Shown here: positions 6,943 to 15,051 of the stretch, piece by piece
Layout: the number at the start of each line of letters is the position of its first letter
Numbering within the stretch: position 1 is the first letter of the stretch
Virus record (IMG/VR): IMGVR_UViG_3300045970_000794
Location: 62,001-126,000 of that record
Strand: one strand, 5' to 3'
Length of the DNA: 64,000 nt
The notes under the pieces: generated by a model
What the model was told of the DNA's origin: nothing
The model's input: only the letters and a program-made list of their open reading frames with translations
Database searches by the model: none
Program-made: the position numbers and the translations under genes

Positions 6943-7494
6943 TTATTGTTTTTTATAAATTCCAACAAATTTACCCGCTTGGAAGAATTCAAACCCATTA
7001 GGTATATTCTTTTTAAAAAGGTAACTATATAAATCCATTCTTCGATTACTTGATGGGGTTTCACCTTTACGAGAATTATATGTTGGCTCAGCGAAAATCA
7101 TTTGAAGTGGTATATCAGCATCATTTAATTTACCAAGAGCACTAGCGATAATACTCTTAACTGTATTCATAATCATAATTACGTCACCTTTATTTGACGT
7201 ATCAGCGAATAAACCTTCATCTTCTCTAAAACTAACATCTAAATAAGCACCATTTTCATCATGATTTAAATTAAGTTTTTTAAGTAATTCCATAAGTAAA
7301 TCTATTGATACTATGTCATTAGCAATTATAACTTCAATCTTATATTCACCATGTTTTTCATTTGGTACTCTGAATTTGTATAAGAAATTAATTAAATTAC
7401 CACGAATTACATTAACTGTTTGTATGAACGGTAAACCATCACCTTCACCAAACTCTTTTAATAATGCTTCCCTTAATTTAAGTTGTATATTCAT
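6943..7494 (-). CDS. hypothetical protein
   Basis: 183-aa ORF preceded by TATTTATA motif. Confidence 0.65.
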   Translation of the reverse strand: MNIQLKLREALLKEFGEGDGLPFIQTVNVIRGNLINFLYKFRVPNEKHGEYKIEVIIANDIVSIDLLMELLKKLNLNHDENGAYLDVSFREDEGLFADTSNKGDVIMIMNTVKSIIASALGKLNDADIPLQMIFAEPTYNSRKGETPSSNRRMDLYSYLFKKNIPNGFEFFQAGKFVGIYKKQ

Positions 7495-7506
7495 AAAATA
7501 ATTTTA

Positions 7507-8670
7507 TTATAAATATCTGGTGAACTTATCAAATTCAGCATGTTCGATTGCTCTACCCATGTCTGGACCTGGTTTTATTCCTTTATCTAACATTTCATCA
7601 CCAGTAACTGATAATTTAAACTGAACAAACGCCTCAATCATTTTCATATCCAATGCATTTAATTCAGCAAATCTTATTAACTCATTAGGCTCGATTTTAG
7701 AGACTATCTCAGCTTTTTTGTATCTGAATACCAATTCTGGTTTAAAGTTAAGCATACGCAATAAAAAGACTATTTTAGATACCTCTATCCAACTATATGT
7801 TAAAGCGTTTAATGCCTTTTGAACTTCTTCTAGATTATTTTTAATTAATAGTCCAGCAATTAATACAATTGGGTCCTTTTCTTCAATAACACCAGCCATA
7901 TTAACATTTAATTTACCAAATATCCATTTAAGTAAATCATATTGTCTGTACATACCAAATAAATGAGTAATTGATTTTGCTGATTTAAATGATTTCAAAA
8001 ATTCATCCCTAATTCTCTCTGGTGAAATACCTTCCAAGCTAGAATCATTTCTTAATGCCATATCAGTAGCTTCATCAAGATTAGAACCAAATCTAGCTGC
8101 GAAACGAATCGCTCTCATGATTCTAAGTCTATCTTCACCAAATCTATCCATTGGCTTACCTACAGTTCTAACAACTCCATTTTCAATATCTTTACGCCCT
8201 TTAACCAAATCAACGATTTCACCAGTTTTAAGGTCATAGAATAACGCATTAATAGTTAAGTCACGTCTTTTCACATCTTTATTTATGTTTGTGAAATTAA
8301 CTCCATCTGGCCTACGCCCAGAACCAACATCACTACGAAAAGTTGCAATCTCAAATTCATCATTAGCAGTAAACACATTAACAACACCAAAAGCTTTACC
8401 AGTTTCTAATATATTAGTAACAAATGGTTGTCCTTTAAGTGTAGCAATAACTTGGTCTGGTGTAGCATCAGTAGCAAGGTCAAAATCTTTAGGTTCTTTT
8501 CCTAATAACGCATCCCTAACTGAACCACCAACTAGGTAAAGGTCAAATCCTTTACTAGCCATAGCGTTTCTAATTAAAATGATGTCATTAGGTACTTGGA
8601 TGTGTGTTTTCTTCCTTTGTCCTAATAACCTTTGTTTTATTCTATTAAATACTGATTCTATAATTTCCAT
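7507..8670 (-). CDS. cca: CCA-adding enzyme / tRNA nucleotidyltransferase
   Basis: LVGGSVRD...KDFDLAT...RRDLTINALFYD...EDRLRIMRAIRFAARF; start MEII at 8670 lies just downstream of a TAnnTTTG promoter. Confidence 0.9.
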   Translation of the reverse strand: MEIIESVFNRIKQRLLGQRKKTHIQVPNDIILIRNAMASKGFDLYLVGGSVRDALLGKEPKDFDLATDATPDQVIATLKGQPFVTNILETGKAFGVVNVFTANDEFEIATFRSDVGSGRRPDGVNFTNINKDVKRRDLTINALFYDLKTGEIVDLVKGRKDIENGVVRTVGKPMDRFGEDRLRIMRAIRFAARFGSNLDEATDMALRNDSSLEGISPERIRDEFLKSFKSAKSITHLFGMYRQYDLLKWIFGKLNVNMAGVIEEKDPIVLIAGLLIKNNLEEVQKALNALTYSWIEVSKIVFLLRMLNFKPELVFRYKKAEIVSKIEPNELIRFAELNALDMKMIEAFVQFKLSVTGDEMLDKGIKPGPDMGRAIEHAEFDKFTRYL

Positions 8671-8713
8671 GATATTTTTTTTTGCAAAGATACTAATTAT
8701 AATATAAATATCC

Positions 8714-8744
8714 AAAAAAAATGGCGAGAAAATTTCCCCGCCAT
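8714..8744 (-). terminator. intrinsic terminator ending the amber-tRNA/pth operon
   Basis: ATGGCG...CGCCAT hairpin plus T run. Confidence 0.6.
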
Positions 8745-8748
8745 CATT

Positions 8749-9198
8749 TTAATGATAAAATAATCCTTTTTTCACTTTAAGTATTATTCTAGCCTCCTCT
8801 ATTTGAACTTTAAGTCGTTTATATTCGGCTCTAAGTTTAATGAGCTCTTGTTCTTGGTGACTTGGTTTGATTTTAATCGTCACACCAGTGATTACACCAA
8901 TTTTAATCATTACATGGAAGAATAAATTGATTGACCTAAGGCTTTTACGTTCTAATGAAATATAAATGCGTTTAGCCATTTTTTTCTTACCGTTTTTACT
9001 CATATTATTTAATATATCACTATTAATAGGGATTGATGCAAGGTTTGCGATATTTGATTCTTCACCATTAATCATTACTACATAGTTATTTTCTTTAATA
9101 ATATCAATAATATGATATAATGCATTATCAAATGCATTCATTAAGTCTTTAGTGTTTCTATAACCTAATACTTCTTTGTTTGTTACTATAGTTTCCAT
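8749..9198 (-). CDS. hypothetical protein (downstream of TAG-containing leader ORF)
   Basis: 149-aa ORF with C-terminal coiled coil. Confidence 0.65.
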   Translation of the reverse strand: METIVTNKEVLGYRNTKDLMNAFDNALYHIIDIIKENNYVVMINGEESNIANLASIPINSDILNNMSKNGKKKMAKRIYISLERKSLRSINLFFHVMIKIGVITGVTIKIKPSHQEQELIKLRAEYKRLKVQIEEARIILKVKKGLFYH

Positions 9199-9275
9199 AA
9201 TTTAAATTTTTTATTTGTTTTTATTTTATTTTACCATGATTTTAACGTATCATGATTTGACGTTATTTTCCCGAG

Positions 9276-9326
9276 TTATAATATGGAAACTGTGGGACAT
9301 CTGATTTTAATCTATAAATCTTTCAT
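9276..9326 (-). CDS. mini leader ORF with in-frame amber: MKDL*IKIRCPTVSIL
   Basis: ATG AAA GAT TTA TAG ATT AAA ATC AGA...TAA, preceded by an A-rich initiation region. Confidence 0.6.
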
Positions 9327-9336
9327 AACTTTAATT

Positions 9337-9690
9337 TTAAATTATTTTATTATTGTATAATTTTAATGCTAATGGTAAACTGCTGCATAGTTTATCGGAA
9401 CCTTCACAAGGTTCTAAGGCAATAGCAGTTATCTCGTAACCAAGGTCTGGCTCGATGAATGTAGAATATTTAATGTTGCGATTTTCGGCTTTGGAAAGTA
9501 ATTCTTTGAGGTGTTCCTCATTACGTGCCGATAAATAAACGAGATATTTGGAATCTCGGTGCCAAATTTTGGCAACTTCTGAATGGTCATGCTGAAATTG
9601 AACGGCAGCGTGTCCCGCTTGAACTGCTTGATAGCTAGGTTCTAAATCGTCTCTGACAATTACATACATTTTTCTGTTAATCTACGTCAT
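9337..9690 (-). CDS. Pth2-like peptidyl-tRNA hydrolase with in-frame TAG at codon 3
   Basis: MT*INRKMYVIVRDDL...QAVQAGHAA...F.EPDLG..ITAIA (PTH2 motifs); upstream ATG ACG TAG ATT is in frame. Confidence 0.8.
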
Positions 9691-9732
9691 AATTTTAATT
9701 TTTAAGTTAAACAATTTTATTTATAATTTTTG

Positions 9733-9807
9733 AGACTCTAGTTGGATTCGAACCCACGCTGACGGGTTTAGAAGCCGCCGCTTTAGACCAAGCTAAGCTA
9801 TAGAGCC
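9733..9807 (-). tRNA. amber suppressor tRNA (CTA anticodon)
   Basis: GGCTCTA/TAGAGTC, D stem GCTT/AAGC, GCGGC-TTCTAAA-CCCGT, U73. Confidence 0.75.
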
Positions 9808-9820
9808 ATTTAATTTAATG

Positions 9821-9852
9821 CAAAGATAATACAAATAATTTAAATGTCCAAA
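9821..9852 (-). promoter_or_regulatory. Bacteroidota sigma70-type promoter
   Basis: TTTG-N20-TATCTTTG; similar motifs near 665-700, 8684-8716, 17892-17926, 22390-22422, 28214-28246, 29049-29082. Confidence 0.75.
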
Positions 9853-10141
9853 TATTTTTGCAGTTTTTTTAAAAAAAATCATAATAGTCTGATTATTAAT
9901 TAATAAAAAACGCTAAAATAATATAAACAAATATTAATGTATAAAGTAAAGCAGCATTTAAAAACCTATTTAAGGTTCCATAAATGCCACTTGACTTATC
10001 ATCACCACCATTAAACAACTTAAAGTTAAAAAATTGATGTGGTTTTACTATTAATGATATTATCGATTTCAATACAAACATTAAATTATTTTTTTATAAT
10101 AAATATCATCAAAATCAATAATATACAAAATAATTTATTAA

Positions 10142-10667
10142 CTACCTGTTTAAAATTTTACCAAAGCGAATTACTTTTTCTATGAATTCTTCCTCTGTAC
10201 CATTATTATCAATGATTACATCAGCACAAGATATGCCAATATTAAATGAATCAGCTGACTCTTGTTCTAATCTTTTAGATGCATCAACCCAAACAATTAA
10301 ATCAAATAACCCTTGTTTCATACATTCTTCAATTTCACCCCTATCTCTCATACCAACATAACAGTCGGCTAATTCAAGAATTCCTTTAGCTAATCTAGCT
10401 CGGTCATCTTTATTATAATCACAAATCACAAATCATATTATACCATTCAGCTCTATGATTTGACCTATCTTCGTAACATTCCTCAGATGTCTTATAATCA
10501 TACTTTTCACTTAATTCATCATAAATGAATATATCAGCAGCTGCTTGTGATGATGAGATAAACTTTAAACCAAAATTATCTCTTAAAATTTCAGCAAACG
10601 TATCTTTACCATGTCTGGCATTTCCAAGGACTAACAGCCTTGGGAACTTACTTTTTCTTGTCTTCAT
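10142..10667 (-). pseudogene. P-loop nucleotide (dNMP-type) kinase split by a 7-bp tandem duplication
   Basis: GNARHGKDT P-loop; ATTTGTG repeated near 10420-10434 separates the 82-aa and 95-aa ORFs, both containing ICD. Confidence 0.75.
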
Positions 10668-11424
10668 AAAAATCTATTTTAAATGTTTTTTTAATTAATT
10701 TATTGTTTTTAATTGCAAATACTATTGAACTTTGAGATACTCCTATGACTCTAGCAGCTTCAGCTCCAGATTCTAAAATAGTAATTTCATTTGTTATAAT
10801 GTTTTTAATCGTAACTTTTTTACTACGTAAACTAATTTGACCAATTTTAAAAGAGTTAGAATTAGATTTAAAATTTTTAGTAAAACGAGCCTCAACTAAC
10901 TCTTTAATATCGGAATTTTTTATTTCATCATGATAAAACCAAGCAATATTTTTAACTGTTTTACAATTACCAAGGCAACATTTTGGAATTACACTTCGAT
11001 GTGTTTTTAATTCTCTAGATGCATCTTCAGCACTATTAAATTCATAAACAATAACACCTTCTTTATTATAACCAATCACACTTTTAGCATTATTACCTTT
11101 CTTGAAACTAGTGTTGTTACCAAATGTACAACCATCACCACCTAATGTATTATTAACTAAATCAAATCCCCATAATTTCATTTGACTAATCCAATATTTT
11201 TCCCAAAAAACCCATTCATCTATCGGTACTACATCAATCACCCATAAAATTGGTTTTAACTCTTCATTTCTTAATGAATTAATCCAATTTCGTTTATGTG
11301 TTTGATGGTCTCTAGCTCTATTCAAATGAGCTTTATATCTTTGTGTTATATTATTCGCTTTACCAACATATCTTACATGACCAGTCCTAGGGTCAATAAG
11401 AACATAAATATTTGTCGTTTCCAT
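10648..11424 (-). CDS. GIY-YIG homing endonuclease with NUMOD1-like repeats
   Basis: NIYVLIDP...YVGKA...E.YWI...L.N; C-terminal AEAARVIGV repeats. Confidence 0.85.
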   Translation of the reverse strand: METTNIYVLIDPRTGHVRYVGKANNITQRYKAHLNRARDHQTHKRNWINSLRNEELKPILWVIDVVPIDEWVFWEKYWISQMKLWGFDLVNNTLGGDGCTFGNNTSFKKGNNAKSVIGYNKEGVIVYEFNSAEDASRELKTHRSVIPKCCLGNCKTVKNIAWFYHDEIKNSDIKELVEARFTKNFKSNSNSFKIGQISLRSKKVTIKNIITNEITILESGAEAARVIGVSQSSIVFAIKNNKLIKKTFKIDFYEDKKK

Positions 11425-11458
11425 ATTAATACATTTCTATATAAATATGGTGAAATCT

Positions 11459-11533
11459 TTAAAAAGTTACAAGCCCATGTCTTCCCGAACCAATGATAAG
11501 TAATTTAGGGAATTGTTTCTTTTCATTAACCAT
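11459..11533 (-). pseudogene. orphan N-terminus of the kinase gene (MVNEKKQFPKLLIIGSGRHG)
   Basis: Manual translation; parallels MKTRKSKFPRLLVLGNARHG downstream of the endonuclease. Confidence 0.75.
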
Positions 11534-11555
11534 TTTAATAATATTTTATTTAATT

Positions 11556-11990
11556 TTATAATCCTTGACTGCAAATACCGTAATTATACTCCAAATGAAC
11601 AGTATTATCGTCATATTGAACAGCTTTAATGTATGGTGACTCATATCCATGGCTCCTAGAATCAAAATACTCGTAATGATGCATAATATCAGATTGAATT
11701 ATCACTTGTTTTCTATTCTTAGCTAATTTACCAGATTTGGTTAATATGATATTATCATAAATCAATTGGTTGATGTCAGTATCTAAATTCATGATTTTTT
11801 CAATAAATTCAGTTTTATATCGATTAAATTCAGCTTCATTTGAAGTGAATCCTTCATCACCACCGTATTCGTTAACATCTTGGGAGTGTTTGAAGTTTTC
11901 TTCATCCCATTCTAATTGATTAACTTTATTTACTAGGGCTTCAATATCATATATAATATCTAAACCATTAATTTTAATATTTTTTTCCAT
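11556..11990 (-). CDS. hypothetical protein
   Basis: 144-aa ORF. Confidence 0.6.
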   Translation of the reverse strand: MEKNIKINGLDIIYDIEALVNKVNQLEWDEENFKHSQDVNEYGGDEGFTSNEAEFNRYKTEFIEKIMNLDTDINQLIYDNIILTKSGKLAKNRKQVIIQSDIMHHYEYFDSRSHGYESPYIKAVQYDDNTVHLEYNYGICSQGL

Positions 11991-11992
11991 AA

Positions 11993-12493
11993 TTACTTTA
12001 ATAATATTGTTATATACCCAATTGGTTCGGTACTATCATCTAAAACTTCAAAATTTGTAATTTCTTTAGTACTTTTAATTGAAAGTCTGGTTGGTATATA
12101 CCGATTAGAATCACATTCAAAACACCATTCAACTTCACAAGCAATTACTACTTCATGTACTTTACCACCAATTTTAAAGTAATCAATTGTTTCAGCACCA
12201 TCTTTATTTAATTTCTCATCACCAAACATATCATAATAACCACAAGTAAAGGCATGTGATTTTAATTGTGTAGTAATAAATTCTTCCACAGTATTAAAGA
12301 CTGGTTGAGGGCACATGACTTCTTTTGTGTTTTTATTAATTTCTTCGGCTTGCTTTTCAGCTTCTTTTTCAATACCATCAAAAATATCTAGAGTTTCAAT
12401 GAATTCATTAAATGGGCATTCAATTTTTTTATCATTGAATGCTTTTTCAATCACTTCAATACTGTATTTCTTCATAATAATTTCATTAGACAC
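11993..12493 (-). CDS. hypothetical protein
   Basis: 166-aa ORF. Confidence 0.6.
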   Translation of the reverse strand: MSNEIIMKKYSIEVIEKAFNDKKIECPFNEFIETLDIFDGIEKEAEKQAEEINKNTKEVMCPQPVFNTVEEFITTQLKSHAFTCGYYDMFGDEKLNKDGAETIDYFKIGGKVHEVVIACEVEWCFECDSNRYIPTRLSIKSTKEITNFEVLDDSTEPIGYITILLK

Positions 12494-12525
12494 AAATATA
12501 CTATAAAATTATGATAGATGCCATA

Positions 12526-13201
12526 TTATTTTAATAATTCTATCTTACCTTTTAAGATTTCTTTTAGACTCACTCTTTTACCAGTTATATGGTCAATAAC
12601 AGTATCATCTTTAACTCTATATGTTCTTCGTTTATCACCACGACACCCATTACCGATTTGTTCTCTTCTCTCATCAATTTCTTCTTCAATAACACCAGTT
12701 TGATAGAATTTATTAACCCGCTTAGTTAATTCACTTAATGCTTCTTCCCTATTTTTATGCTGGTCACGACCATCACGCACTACTTTAATACCAGTAGCAT
12801 AATGAGTCATTACAACGCATGAATCAGTAGTGTTGCGGTGCTGACCACCTTTACCACTACCTCTAATAGTTTCAATACGAATCTCAGATGGGTGTATTTC
12901 AACCATCTTATATTCATTTTTTTCTAAAATTGCTACAGTTATTGAACTTGTGTGAACTCTACCACGTTTTTCTGTTGGTGAAACTCTTTGCCATAAATGG
13001 GTGCCCGATTCTGAATTGAAAAAATCGGAGGCTTCTGGTGAGCTAAAGGCAGAAAACTATATTACTAGGTGTCTCACTTAATAATTCATATCTAAAATCG
13101 TTACGATTACACGCTTTCACGTATATTTTATATAACTCCCTAACTAATAATTTTGAATCTTCACCACCCTCGGCAGCTCTAATTTCAACTGTTGTTTTCA
13201 T
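12526..13201 (-). CDS. class I peptide chain release factor (about 224 aa) requiring a +1 frameshift at CTT-TAG-C
   Basis: Frame 0: [19 protein letters not shown]...VFCL*; +1 frame: [34 protein letters not shown]...GSGKGGQH, joining ORF 12526-12906. Confidence 0.85.
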
Positions 13202-13937
13202 AATATTTATTTTTATTTAAATTTCCAATATATTCTATACCGTTTATTATTCTTGTTGTAGCCCATAACGGACGTAAATTATTCAACGCATTTACAACAC
13301 TAGGCGGTGAATCAATTGGGAATGACGATATTGGTTTAATATGGTCAACATGCCATTCACCATGATTATCCCACGACATCCCTTCAGTAAATAGTGATTC
13401 AATATGATGTTTAAATTGGGTTGCAGAATACCCTAACAAGTCAATAGTATGACCTTCTTTAGACTTACCTAATCGTTTAAGTGTGAAGTATAATAAATCA
13501 CCCCAAATTTTACGATATGGGTGATTTTTCCTGTATTTTTGTCTATTTTCATCAATCTTACTTTTATTTAATTTTCGGTATTCTTTATCATAAGCTCGTT
13601 TCTTATCTCGATTTTCTTTAGCGTAAAGTCTATCTTTCTCTCTAACATCATCAACATTATCTAACCGATATTGTTTTTGATAATCATTTCGCTTATCCTT
13701 ATTAACTTCCCGATATTCTTTAAAATAAATATCTAACTTATCTTTATTCTTATCTCTATACTCACTGTCTTGTTTACGTTTAGAATCTAAATATGTTTCA
13801 GAATAAACAACAACATCGAAAATTTCTTCTCTCAATTTTTTTATTGTTAACCCATGTTTTTTCAAATGACTACTACTTAAATATAATAATTCGTTATCAC
13901 AAATAGGACAGACAATATAATCAACATTTTTTACCAT
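13185..13937 (-). CDS. HNH endonuclease
   Basis: FKHHIESLFTEGMSWDNHGEWHVDHIKP...NALNNLRPLW. Confidence 0.85.
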   Translation of the reverse strand: MVKNVDYIVCPICDNELLYLSSSHLKKHGLTIKKLREEIFDVVVYSETYLDSKRKQDSEYRDKNKDKLDIYFKEYREVNKDKRNDYQKQYRLDNVDDVREKDRLYAKENRDKKRAYDKEYRKLNKSKIDENRQKYRKNHPYRKIWGDLLYFTLKRLGKSKEGHTIDLLGYSATQFKHHIESLFTEGMSWDNHGEWHVDHIKPISSFPIDSPPSVVNALNNLRPLWATTRIINGIEYIGNLNKNKYYENNS

Positions 13938-13998
13938 AATTATAAATATAATGAAAAATTAAAAAACATCAATAGTAGCGAGTATTTATTTTAAAAAT

Positions 13999-14026
13999 AA
14001 AAAAAAAGGAATCCGAAGATTCCTTT
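13999..14026 (-). terminator. terminator of RNA operon 2
   Basis: AAGGAATC-ttcg-GATTCCTT plus T run. Confidence 0.8.
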
Positions 14027-14036
14027 GTAAAATGGA

Positions 14037-14089
14037 CAGGTTAGCTTTTTTTTTCTAATAAAGAGCGTTTTAATTGCTGAATGTAACCT
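14037..14089 (-). ncRNA. stem-GCAA family small RNA
   Basis: AGGTTA-CATTCAGCAA...TAACCTG. Confidence 0.6.
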
Positions 14090-14097
14090 TTACCTTG

Positions 14098-14162
14098 TAG
14101 AGGTGGATGGATATGAACCGCCAACCTGTCTTACGACCGCTCTGGACTTGAGCTACACCTCT
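14098..14162 (-). ncRNA. anticodon-less tRNA-like RNA
   Basis: AGAGGTG/CACCTCT, D arm, GTC-GTAA-GAC in place of the anticodon arm, T-like arm. Confidence 0.7.
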
Positions 14163-14173
14163 AATTGAATTGT

Positions 14174-14286
14174 TGGTGTGAAAACCTATTTCGTTCTGGT
14201 TTTTCTTTTACCCGTCATTACATCGGGACACAAATTACGTCCGTAATCGGAGACTATCCACGATTATGTTACCATAACCTTTTCAC
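14174..14286 (-). ncRNA. structured RNA closed by a 7-bp acceptor-like stem with encoded ACCA
   Basis: GTGAAAA/TTTTCAC-A-CCA; no canonical T loop. Confidence 0.4.
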
Positions 14287-14346
14287 AATTTTAACCTTGG
14301 CCTTCGGTTTCCATCGAGATTTAGATGTTTCGTAATCAACAATTTG

Positions 14347-14423
14347 TAGCGGGTCATGGGAGTCGAACCCAGTATCTCTGAGGTTATGAGCCTCGAATGA
14401 TTATTCCGTTTCACTCACCCGCA
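14347..14423 (-). tRNA. tRNA-Met(CAT), initiator-like
   Basis: 1:72 mismatch, GAGG-CTCATAA-CCTC. Confidence 0.8.
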
Positions 14424-14429
14424 ATATCG

Positions 14430-14502
14430 TGGGAAAGAAAGGAGTCGCACCTTAACTTGTATCAACCTCAGATTGTTACCAACCCTACTATACAACTTTC
14501 CC
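14430..14502 (-). ncRNA. anticodon-less tRNA-like RNA
   Basis: GGGAAAG/CTTTCCC-A, GTAT/ATAC stem with expanded loop, AAGG-TGCGACT-CCTT. Confidence 0.6.
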
Positions 14503-14515
14503 AATTTTTTTTTTG

Positions 14516-14587
14516 TAGCGGGAGTAGGACTCGAACCTACGACCTACGGGTTATGAGCCCGCCGAGCTACCACTGCTCCACCCCGCA
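14516..14587 (-). tRNA. tRNA-fMet(CAT)
   Basis: 1:72 mismatch, GCGGG-CTCATAA-CCCGT. Confidence 0.9.
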
Positions 14588-14621
14588 ATATATTTTTAGT
14601 TTAGCTATTTTCAAAAAAAGT

Positions 14622-14694
14622 GTTAAGACGGCTGGATTTGAACACAGCAACTCGGGATTTAGTCCACGCAAGATACTATTTCTATACATCTTAA
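14622..14694 (-). pseudogene. degenerate tRNA-like sequence
   Basis: TTAAGAT/GTCTTAA acceptor and GTTCAAATC T loop; aberrant anticodon loop GGA-CTAAA-TCC. Confidence 0.5.
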
Positions 14695-14726
14695 CACATA
14701 TATAAATATGCGCTAAATTGAAAAAG

Positions 14727-14798
14727 TACTCGATAGGAGAATCGAACTCCTATTTAAAGCTTGAAAAGCTTCCGTCCTAACCGTTAGACGAATCGAGC
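14727..14798 (-). tRNA. tRNA-Glu(TTC)
   Basis: Standard cloverleaf, loop TTTTCAA. Confidence 0.9.
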
Positions 14799-14806
14799 AT
14801 ATGACA

Positions 14807-14866
14807 CAGGAAAACTTTGTTTTCAAATTTTCAGATTTTGATTTTTAAGTTTGCTGAATGTTTCCT
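14807..14866 (-). ncRNA. stem-GCAA family small RNA
   Basis: AGGAAAC-ATTCAGCAA...GTTTTCCTG. Confidence 0.6.
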
Positions 14867-14882
14867 TTAGTCACTTTGTAAA

Positions 14883-14950
14883 CAGGCTAGTTACTTTAAC
14901 ACTACTGAATTTTAAATTTAGTTTGTTTTTAGTTTTGCTGAACCTAACCT
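14883..14950 (-). ncRNA. stem-GCAA family small RNA
   Basis: AGGTTAG-GTTCAGCAA...AACTAGCCTG. Confidence 0.6.
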
Positions 14951-14958
14951 TAATCCCG

Positions 14959-15051
14959 TGGCCCCCGCTGGATTTGAACCAGCACCTATCTTGCGATATG
15001 CTCTCGAATCATTTCTATAAATAGAAGTTATTCTCCTTGAGCTAGGTGACC
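14959..15051 (-). ncRNA. anticodon-less tRNA-like RNA with expanded D loop
   Basis: GGTCACC/GGGGGCC, GCTC/GAGC, TATC-GCAA-GATA, GCTGG-TTCAAAT-CCAGC. Confidence 0.7.

Follow-up and report, generated by a model that had tools for sequence, protein, structure and literature searches.

A homing endonuclease cassette was identified in the genome of a giant phage, which has inserted into the ATP-binding-loop codons of a small P-loop kinase gene and brought a substitute start of that gene with it, although the kinase is broken further downstream by a 7-nt duplication and is probably inactive in this phage. The stretch analysed here (the window, 64,000 nt) comprises bases 62001-126000 of a 362,102-bp virus record (IMGVR_UViG_3300045970_000794) with terminal repeats, which was rated complete, has about 30% G+C and came from a pond metagenome. 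On the minus strand, on which all genes around the insertion lie, a 20-codon orphan kinase start is followed by an 866-nt insert and then by the kinase body, and the insert lies exactly between the Gly and Lys codons of the Walker A loop (Table 1). A sequence-only reading had proposed a GIY-YIG insertion in a kinase P-loop that carries its own recoded, cleavage-immune repair patch; its features were confirmed where it had placed them and its core idea was supported by comparison with endonuclease-free relatives, whereas it had ended the kinase at 10419 and missed the frameshift, and its claims of recoding and immunity hold only in the weaker form described below.

Table 1. Coordinates of the cassette and of the invaded kinase gene within the 64,000-nt window.
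Feature	Coordinates	Strand	Description
Orphan	11474..11533	-	Resident first 20 codons of the kinase, ending ..IIGSGRHG, cut off after the second Walker A glycine (codon GGG)
Orphan ORF	11459..11533	-	Orphan plus the cassette 5′ end
Cassette	10608..11473	-	866 nt; stop tail, leader, endonuclease gene and replacement kinase start
Cassette 5′ end	11459..11473	-	Four codons (LVTF) and a TAA stop that end the orphan reading frame
Leader	11425..11472	-	Inferred cassette-borne promoter with two boxes 18-19 nt apart
Leader box 1	11467..11472	-	TTGTAA
Leader box 2	11440..11449	-	CATATTTATA
Endonuclease gene	10648..11424	-	GIY-YIG, 258 aa, intact
Patch	10608..10667	-	Replacement first 20 codons of the kinase, ending ..VLGNARHG (Gly codon GGT); start codon inside the endonuclease ORF, 20-nt overlap
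Kinase body	10142..10607	-	Resident, from the Walker A lysine onward (KDTFAEIL...), in two frames: 10607..10419, then 10429..10142
Tandem duplication	10422..10435	-	TGATTTG twice (10435..10429 and 10428..10422); shifts the frame by +1
Premature stop	10419..10421	-	TGA

The endonuclease belongs to the I-TevI-like GIY-YIG enzymes, as Pfam yielded the GIY-YIG domain (PF01541, 2.3e-6, 28.2 bits against a cut-off of 22.6) and NUMOD1 (26.4 bits) above their cut-offs, and the I-TevI DNA-binding domain (24.4 bits) and an I-HmuI NUMOD-like module (22.3 bits) just below theirs. The catalytic-domain residues Y7, Y19, G21, R29, H33, E75 and N91 are invariant across 8 homologues, and a profile aligned to the I-TevI catalytic domain 1mk0 and to the I-HmuI C-terminus. 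Counted from the junction (11473), the leader has 49 nt, of which the first 15 are the LVTF-stop tail. Its two boxes are conserved across cassettes whose endonucleases are only about 50-60% identical, suggesting a promoter, although a simple sigma-70 scan did not call this site and found promoter-like sites no more frequent than in shuffles; a fixed-spacing TAnnTTTG-N20-ATG pattern was not enriched either.

The two kinase halves hit nothing in Pfam, but each shows about 80% amino-acid identity to the closest kinase relative (locus L003; L numbers denote viral-contig and metagenomic loci), and both halves lie in a single ORF of about 165-175 aa in all 70 related loci. The Walker A motif (G-x4-G-K-[DST]) is present, and full-length relatives weakly matched the dNMP-kinase models, namely Pfam DNMK at 15-25 bits, below its cut-off of 27.1, and PHROG 139 at 2.6e-9, with a better hit to the unnamed PHROG 38514. 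A structural model built from 33 relatives was confident (AF2, pLDDT 93.5) and predicted a P-loop nucleotide-kinase fold, with an adenylate-kinase-related protein, dephospho-CoA kinase and T4 dNMP kinase as the best Foldseek hits (E about 1e-5, TM 0.46-0.64). The protein is a small P-loop nucleotide-type kinase, probably of the dNMP type, although its substrate is only inferred. Within the genome, the DNMK model found nothing, PHROG 139 found one other weak P-loop match outside the window, and no second copy of the kinase was detected beyond the orphan, to which the patch is only weakly similar (tblastn, E 0.004).

The same three-part layout was found in 10 other distinct loci. Among the 70 viral-contig loci holding the kinase, six have a related endonuclease immediately upstream, and four of these (L045/L046, L058 and L059) show an orphan kinase start cut after the same glycine and followed by the same sequence. 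A metagenome scan with the endonuclease added L098, L100 (endonuclease frameshifted), L101, L102/L107, L103 and L104, as well as L105, in which the layout sits in a different kinase family, with an orphan ending ..NGNNNSG, then the endonuclease, and then a kinase reading ..NGANNSGKD. The first bases of the cassette, (C/G/A)TTGTAAC followed by a T-run and AA, are conserved in the window, L045, L058, L059, L098, L100, L102, L103 and L104, with a second box CATATTTAT 18-19 nt later. In contrast, L003, L040 and L099 have the endonuclease but no clear orphan, though L003 keeps the junction motif. An exact-pattern scan of viral contigs for the 5′ junction returned only the known loci plus chance matches, and a single-protein scan with the endonuclease returned mostly endonucleases in other contexts.

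Nearly identical empty and filled alleles fixed the boundaries of the insert. L102 and the endonuclease-free L051 are 98.8% identical over 2163 nt upstream and 97.4% over 2142 nt downstream, and differ by an 884-nt insert exactly between the Gly and Lys codons; joining the L102 orphan to its kinase body recreated the L051 sequence over ±110 nt except for one base in the junction codon, GGG in L102 and GCG in L051. L058 and the endonuclease-free L060 are homologous upstream up to the last base of the Gly codon and again from the patch onward, and the L059 orphan is 44 of 44 nt identical to the start of the endonuclease-free L072. For the window itself, a megablast of 9000-13000 against deposited phage genomes gave no match and a search of viral contigs with the upstream neighbour (11556..11990) found no relative, so that synteny could not be followed in IMG/VR; however, a 330-nt contig from another sample (run X3) joins 11670..11487 (7 differences in 184 nt) through 13 diverged bases directly to 10607..10519. 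This single short, low-depth contig comprises the end of the upstream gene, the ‘orphan’ as the working start of an endonuclease-free kinase, a P-loop reading ..SMRWG and the kinase body, the lower side of the joint beginning at the first base of the Lys codon. Endonuclease-free genomes have one kinase with one start, and the two starts are not paralogues.

The endonuclease and the patch travel together as one unit with sharp ends. Between L058 and L059, the orphans are about 70% and the kinase bodies about 84% identical, while the 678 nt from the first cassette base to the Gly codon of the patch are 98-100% identical, and identity changes within about 10 nt of each junction. Carriers are scattered on the kinase tree, although this tree is poorly resolved and does not exclude a single origin of the cassette. 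It should be noted that mobility is shown for sister cassettes and not for the window's own, of which no second copy was found, the closest endonuclease being 60% identical.

Sequence comparison at the junction indirectly supports a specific target and immunity of the carrier. All nine scorable orphans end in CAYGGG, against 12 of 50 non-redundant endonuclease-free alleles (Fisher 2e-5), and none of nine patches uses GGG, although the patches did not differ significantly from the endonuclease-free alleles on their own (p 0.18). A boundary one base earlier, with the third G of the orphan's GGG belonging to the cassette, was rejected, because the patches of L058 and L059 both have GGT and that of L102 has GGA where the matching empty alleles have G. 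Of 12 endonuclease-linked working alleles, 11 lack CAYGGG, having either another glycine codon or Trp or Ser in place of His. Endonuclease-free alleles often carry changes at exactly this site as well: six non-redundant ones have Ala in place of the invariant Walker A glycine, always at the insertion codon, and the X3 allele reads RWG; overall, the variants RWG, RSG and RHA occur in patch alleles and in endonuclease-free alleles, and we read them as target-site resistance. The window's patch still encodes RHG and keeps CATGG, however, its only junction-codon difference from an invaded allele being GGT for GGG. Orphan and patch are only modestly more divergent than random allele pairs (19.1 against 21.7 identical bases of 36, and 26% against 37% identical codons where the amino acid is the same; 20 of 36 nt over the last 12 codons in the window), so that ‘recoded’ is a fair but mild description and the patch is essentially a start from another kinase lineage.

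Several endonuclease-free alleles keep pieces of the endonuclease 3′ end just upstream of their start codon, namely L072 (108 nt, 86%, E 6e-23), L030 (32 nt, 100%), L013 and L012/L061, so the patch persists as the working gene start after the endonuclease is lost. An L072-type start was later invaded again, giving the L059 orphan.

Collectively, these comparative data are best explained, with good though not full confidence, by a mobile homing-endonuclease cassette specialised for the Walker A codons of a phage P-loop kinase gene, in which a stop tail ends the orphaned resident start, a leader probably serves as promoter, and a start codon with about 20 substitute codons, abutting or overlapping the end of the endonuclease gene, joins in frame to the resident body. 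We infer that the enzyme cuts endonuclease-free alleles at or next to CAYGGG followed by the Lys-Asp codons, and that the break is repaired from a cassette-bearing genome in a mixed infection, with the orphan start and upstream DNA as one homology arm and the kinase body as the other. The carrier's own junctions would not be full targets, as the orphan junction lacks the downstream half and the patch junction has a non-GGG glycine codon and different upstream codons. The family goes through a cycle of invasion, decay or loss of the endonuclease with the patch kept, and re-invasion. Homing endonucleases are thought to need an intron, an intein, an intergenic site or a tolerated gene split to persist in coding DNA, and bringing a spare gene start is another route in phages. 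It is somewhat more likely than not that such patch-carrying cassettes, with a heterologous, cleavage-resistant gene start and their own expression signals, are a distinct and recurrent strategy in large phages, the full cycle of which would explain why the first ∼20 codons of these kinases are a mosaic, and would drive an arms race visible as the recurrent catalytic-loop changes in endonuclease-free alleles. Orphan mini-ORFs, ‘odd’ P-loops and mosaic N-termini may be traces of homing, and the 24-codon orphan and the two-frame kinase should not be annotated as separate genes.

Alternatively, a free-standing endonuclease gene could normally sit upstream of the kinase, as with the T4 seg and mob genes, the orphan being an accidental scar of one illegitimate repair event that was then inherited vertically. 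Endonucleases directly upstream of the kinase without an orphan do occur in L040, L099 and perhaps L003, a single origin is not excluded, and this is a plausible account of how the first such cassette arose; as a general explanation it is nevertheless unlikely, given the near-identical cassettes in different allele backgrounds, the nearly isogenic empty allele, the orphans that differ between loci and match local endonuclease-free alleles, and the same layout in a second kinase family.

The frameshift deserves separate consideration. Relatives read ..ATGATTTGTGATTAT.. where the window has TGATTTG twice, and the duplication, which breaks the frame of the rebuilt gene 180 nt downstream and is unrelated to the cassette, is real, because it was reproduced without difference in contigs of two pond samples from different studies (X1 record 1, and X2 record 10, which spans 10267..10629). 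Alternative genetic codes did not rescue the gene, since the stops are TAA and TGA and reading TGA through runs into TAA two codons later. Programmed +1 frameshifting, or two polypeptides that assemble, could make the duplication harmless; the second frame opens with a GTG 8 nt before the first frame's stop, and recoding occurs in this genome, as the same phage has a release-factor gene with a CUU-UAG-C shift site. Yet this seems improbable, because the site (GAT TTG TGA) has no known shift-prone motif, the relatives have one uninterrupted frame, and the break falls inside a single domain predicted with confidence.

A group I intron or another spliced or bypassed element, as might be expected for an I-TevI-type enzyme in a conserved catalytic motif, is very unlikely, as only 49 nt precede the endonuclease ORF and none follow it, Rfam found only the tRNA and no intron at E up to 1, the insert ends with a start codon plus a homologous in-frame copy of the same 20 codons, and endonuclease-free alleles that keep the patch exist. 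An assembly chimera of co-occurring alleles is equally improbable even though related strains co-occur in the same waters, since X1 in one piece and X2 in overlapping pieces including both junction regions reproduced the stretch without difference, and more than 10 independent contigs from other samples show the architecture.

The closest known systems are the mobile endonuclease ORFs (mORFs) of fungal mitochondria, i.e. Allomyces macrogynus atp6 and Glomus atp6, atp9, cox2 and nad3 (PMC3630166, which cites the Allomyces case), in which a LAGLIDADG or GIY-YIG gene inserts with a foreign copy of the displaced gene end, the resident end remains as an unexpressed remnant, the two copies are much more divergent in DNA than in protein, and a hybrid gene results. 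There, the 3′ end is replaced, and the inserted piece comes before the endonuclease and is often fused in frame with it; here, the 5′ end is replaced, so the cassette must also supply a start codon and probably a promoter, the insertion point is a catalytic-motif codon pair, and spread in a phage host depends on mixed infection. Free-standing endonucleases of T4-like phages (PMC2988022) likewise spread without an intron by a double-strand break and repair with co-conversion, and are sporadically distributed, but sit between genes or split a gene into two separately made polypeptides (mobE in nrdA of phage Aeh1, mobA in T4 gene 60); none is described as bringing a substitute gene start and leaving the resident one as an orphan, nor did our literature searches find such a phage cassette. 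In T4, an endonuclease gene can also travel with an extra piece that preserves expression of the invaded gene and makes the carrier's site uncleavable, which is a 50-nt translational bypass element in a split gene, whereas here it is a plain duplicate of the first 20 codons. Integrative elements in tRNA or protein genes restore their target by a copy of the displaced end too, but use integrases and short identical core sites, while here movement is by endonuclease break and homologous repair and the replacement copy is unlike the resident one. I-TevI of T4 td shares the N-terminal GIY-YIG domain and a C-terminal helix-turn-helix DNA-binding module but is intron-encoded, and the C-terminal modules of the present family differ from it and come in two types at the same site, long with two NUMOD1-like repeats and short with a NUMOD3-like linker.

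In the window, a release-factor gene with an RF-1 domain and a GGQ motif lies in two frames, with frame 0 ending ..NIVFCL at a TAG and the protein continuing in the +1 frame. The shift site reads CTT TAG C, which is the classic prfB-type +1 frameshift context, but with UAG instead of UGA, and the same two-frame layout is present in L040, one of the related loci. A suppressor tRNA with anticodon CUA, which reads UAG, lies just downstream of the kinase and next to a PTH2 peptidyl-tRNA hydrolase; it was labeled Pyl by ARAGORN and scored 51 bits with the Rfam tRNA model. Twelve more tRNA genes were also found in the window, and together with the release factor, this looks like a stop-codon recoding toolkit.

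Among the endonuclease-free kinase alleles, those of the loci L007/L008, L024, L026/L027, L028, L031 and L051 read GHARHA-KD, namely that the second Walker A glycine is replaced by alanine exactly at the cassette insertion codon. This replacement occurs in several clades and with different codons, and L051 differs only by this base from the reconstructed empty site of the cassette-bearing locus L102. In addition, remnants of the 3′-end of the endonuclease gene lie directly upstream of the endonuclease-free kinase starts in L072, L030, L013 and L012/L061, indicating a past loss of the endonuclease with the patch, i.e. the replacement kinase start, retained. The same orphan-endonuclease-patch layout was observed in a different, T4 gp1-like kinase in the metagenomic locus L105, where the orphan ends ..NGNNNSG and a GTG-started patch reads ..NGANNSGKD; while in L073/L074 a related endonuclease sits directly upstream of a third P-loop protein, with no orphan.

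Within the patch coding region of the window, a 9-bp inverted repeat (sense strand: TTCCCAAGG, 8 nt, CCTTGGAAA) was found about 20 nt after the new start codon, which could affect translation or be chance, and it is not conserved in other patches. The kinase of L023 is frameshifted relative to the near-identical L015 by a one-base deletion in a T-run, and this may be an assembly error or a second independent inactivation. Outside the window, two further GIY-YIG endonuclease-like stretches are present in the same genome (contig G000:C1), of which one has internal stops (45% identity) and one is open (31% identity). The endonuclease gene in the orphan-type cassette of L100 is itself frameshifted, with 84 aa and then continuing in another frame, and this is a decaying copy.

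Positions of the additional features in the window, in the remainder of the genome and in the related loci
Sequence	Position	Strand	Feature
Window	12526..13201	-	Release-factor gene in two frames
L040	3317-3478 and 3444-3995		Two-frame layout as in the window's release-factor gene
Window	9732..9807	-	Suppressor tRNA
Window	9337..9669	-	PTH2 peptidyl-tRNA hydrolase
Window	3271..15051		Stretch holding the twelve further tRNA genes
L007/L008, L024, L026/L027, L028, L031, L051	about 4829 in most		Walker A glycine-to-alanine alleles
L072	4676..4783		Endonuclease 3′-end remnant
L030	4753..4780		Endonuclease 3′-end remnant
L013			Endonuclease 3′-end remnant
L012/L061			Endonuclease 3′-end remnant
L105	2440..3330		Orphan-endonuclease-patch layout
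Window	10621..10646		Inverted repeat
L023	about 4905		One-base deletion
G000:C1	181487-181738	-	GIY-YIG endonuclease-like stretch
G000:C1	213366-214046	+	GIY-YIG endonuclease-like stretch
L100	1116..1850		Frameshifted endonuclease gene
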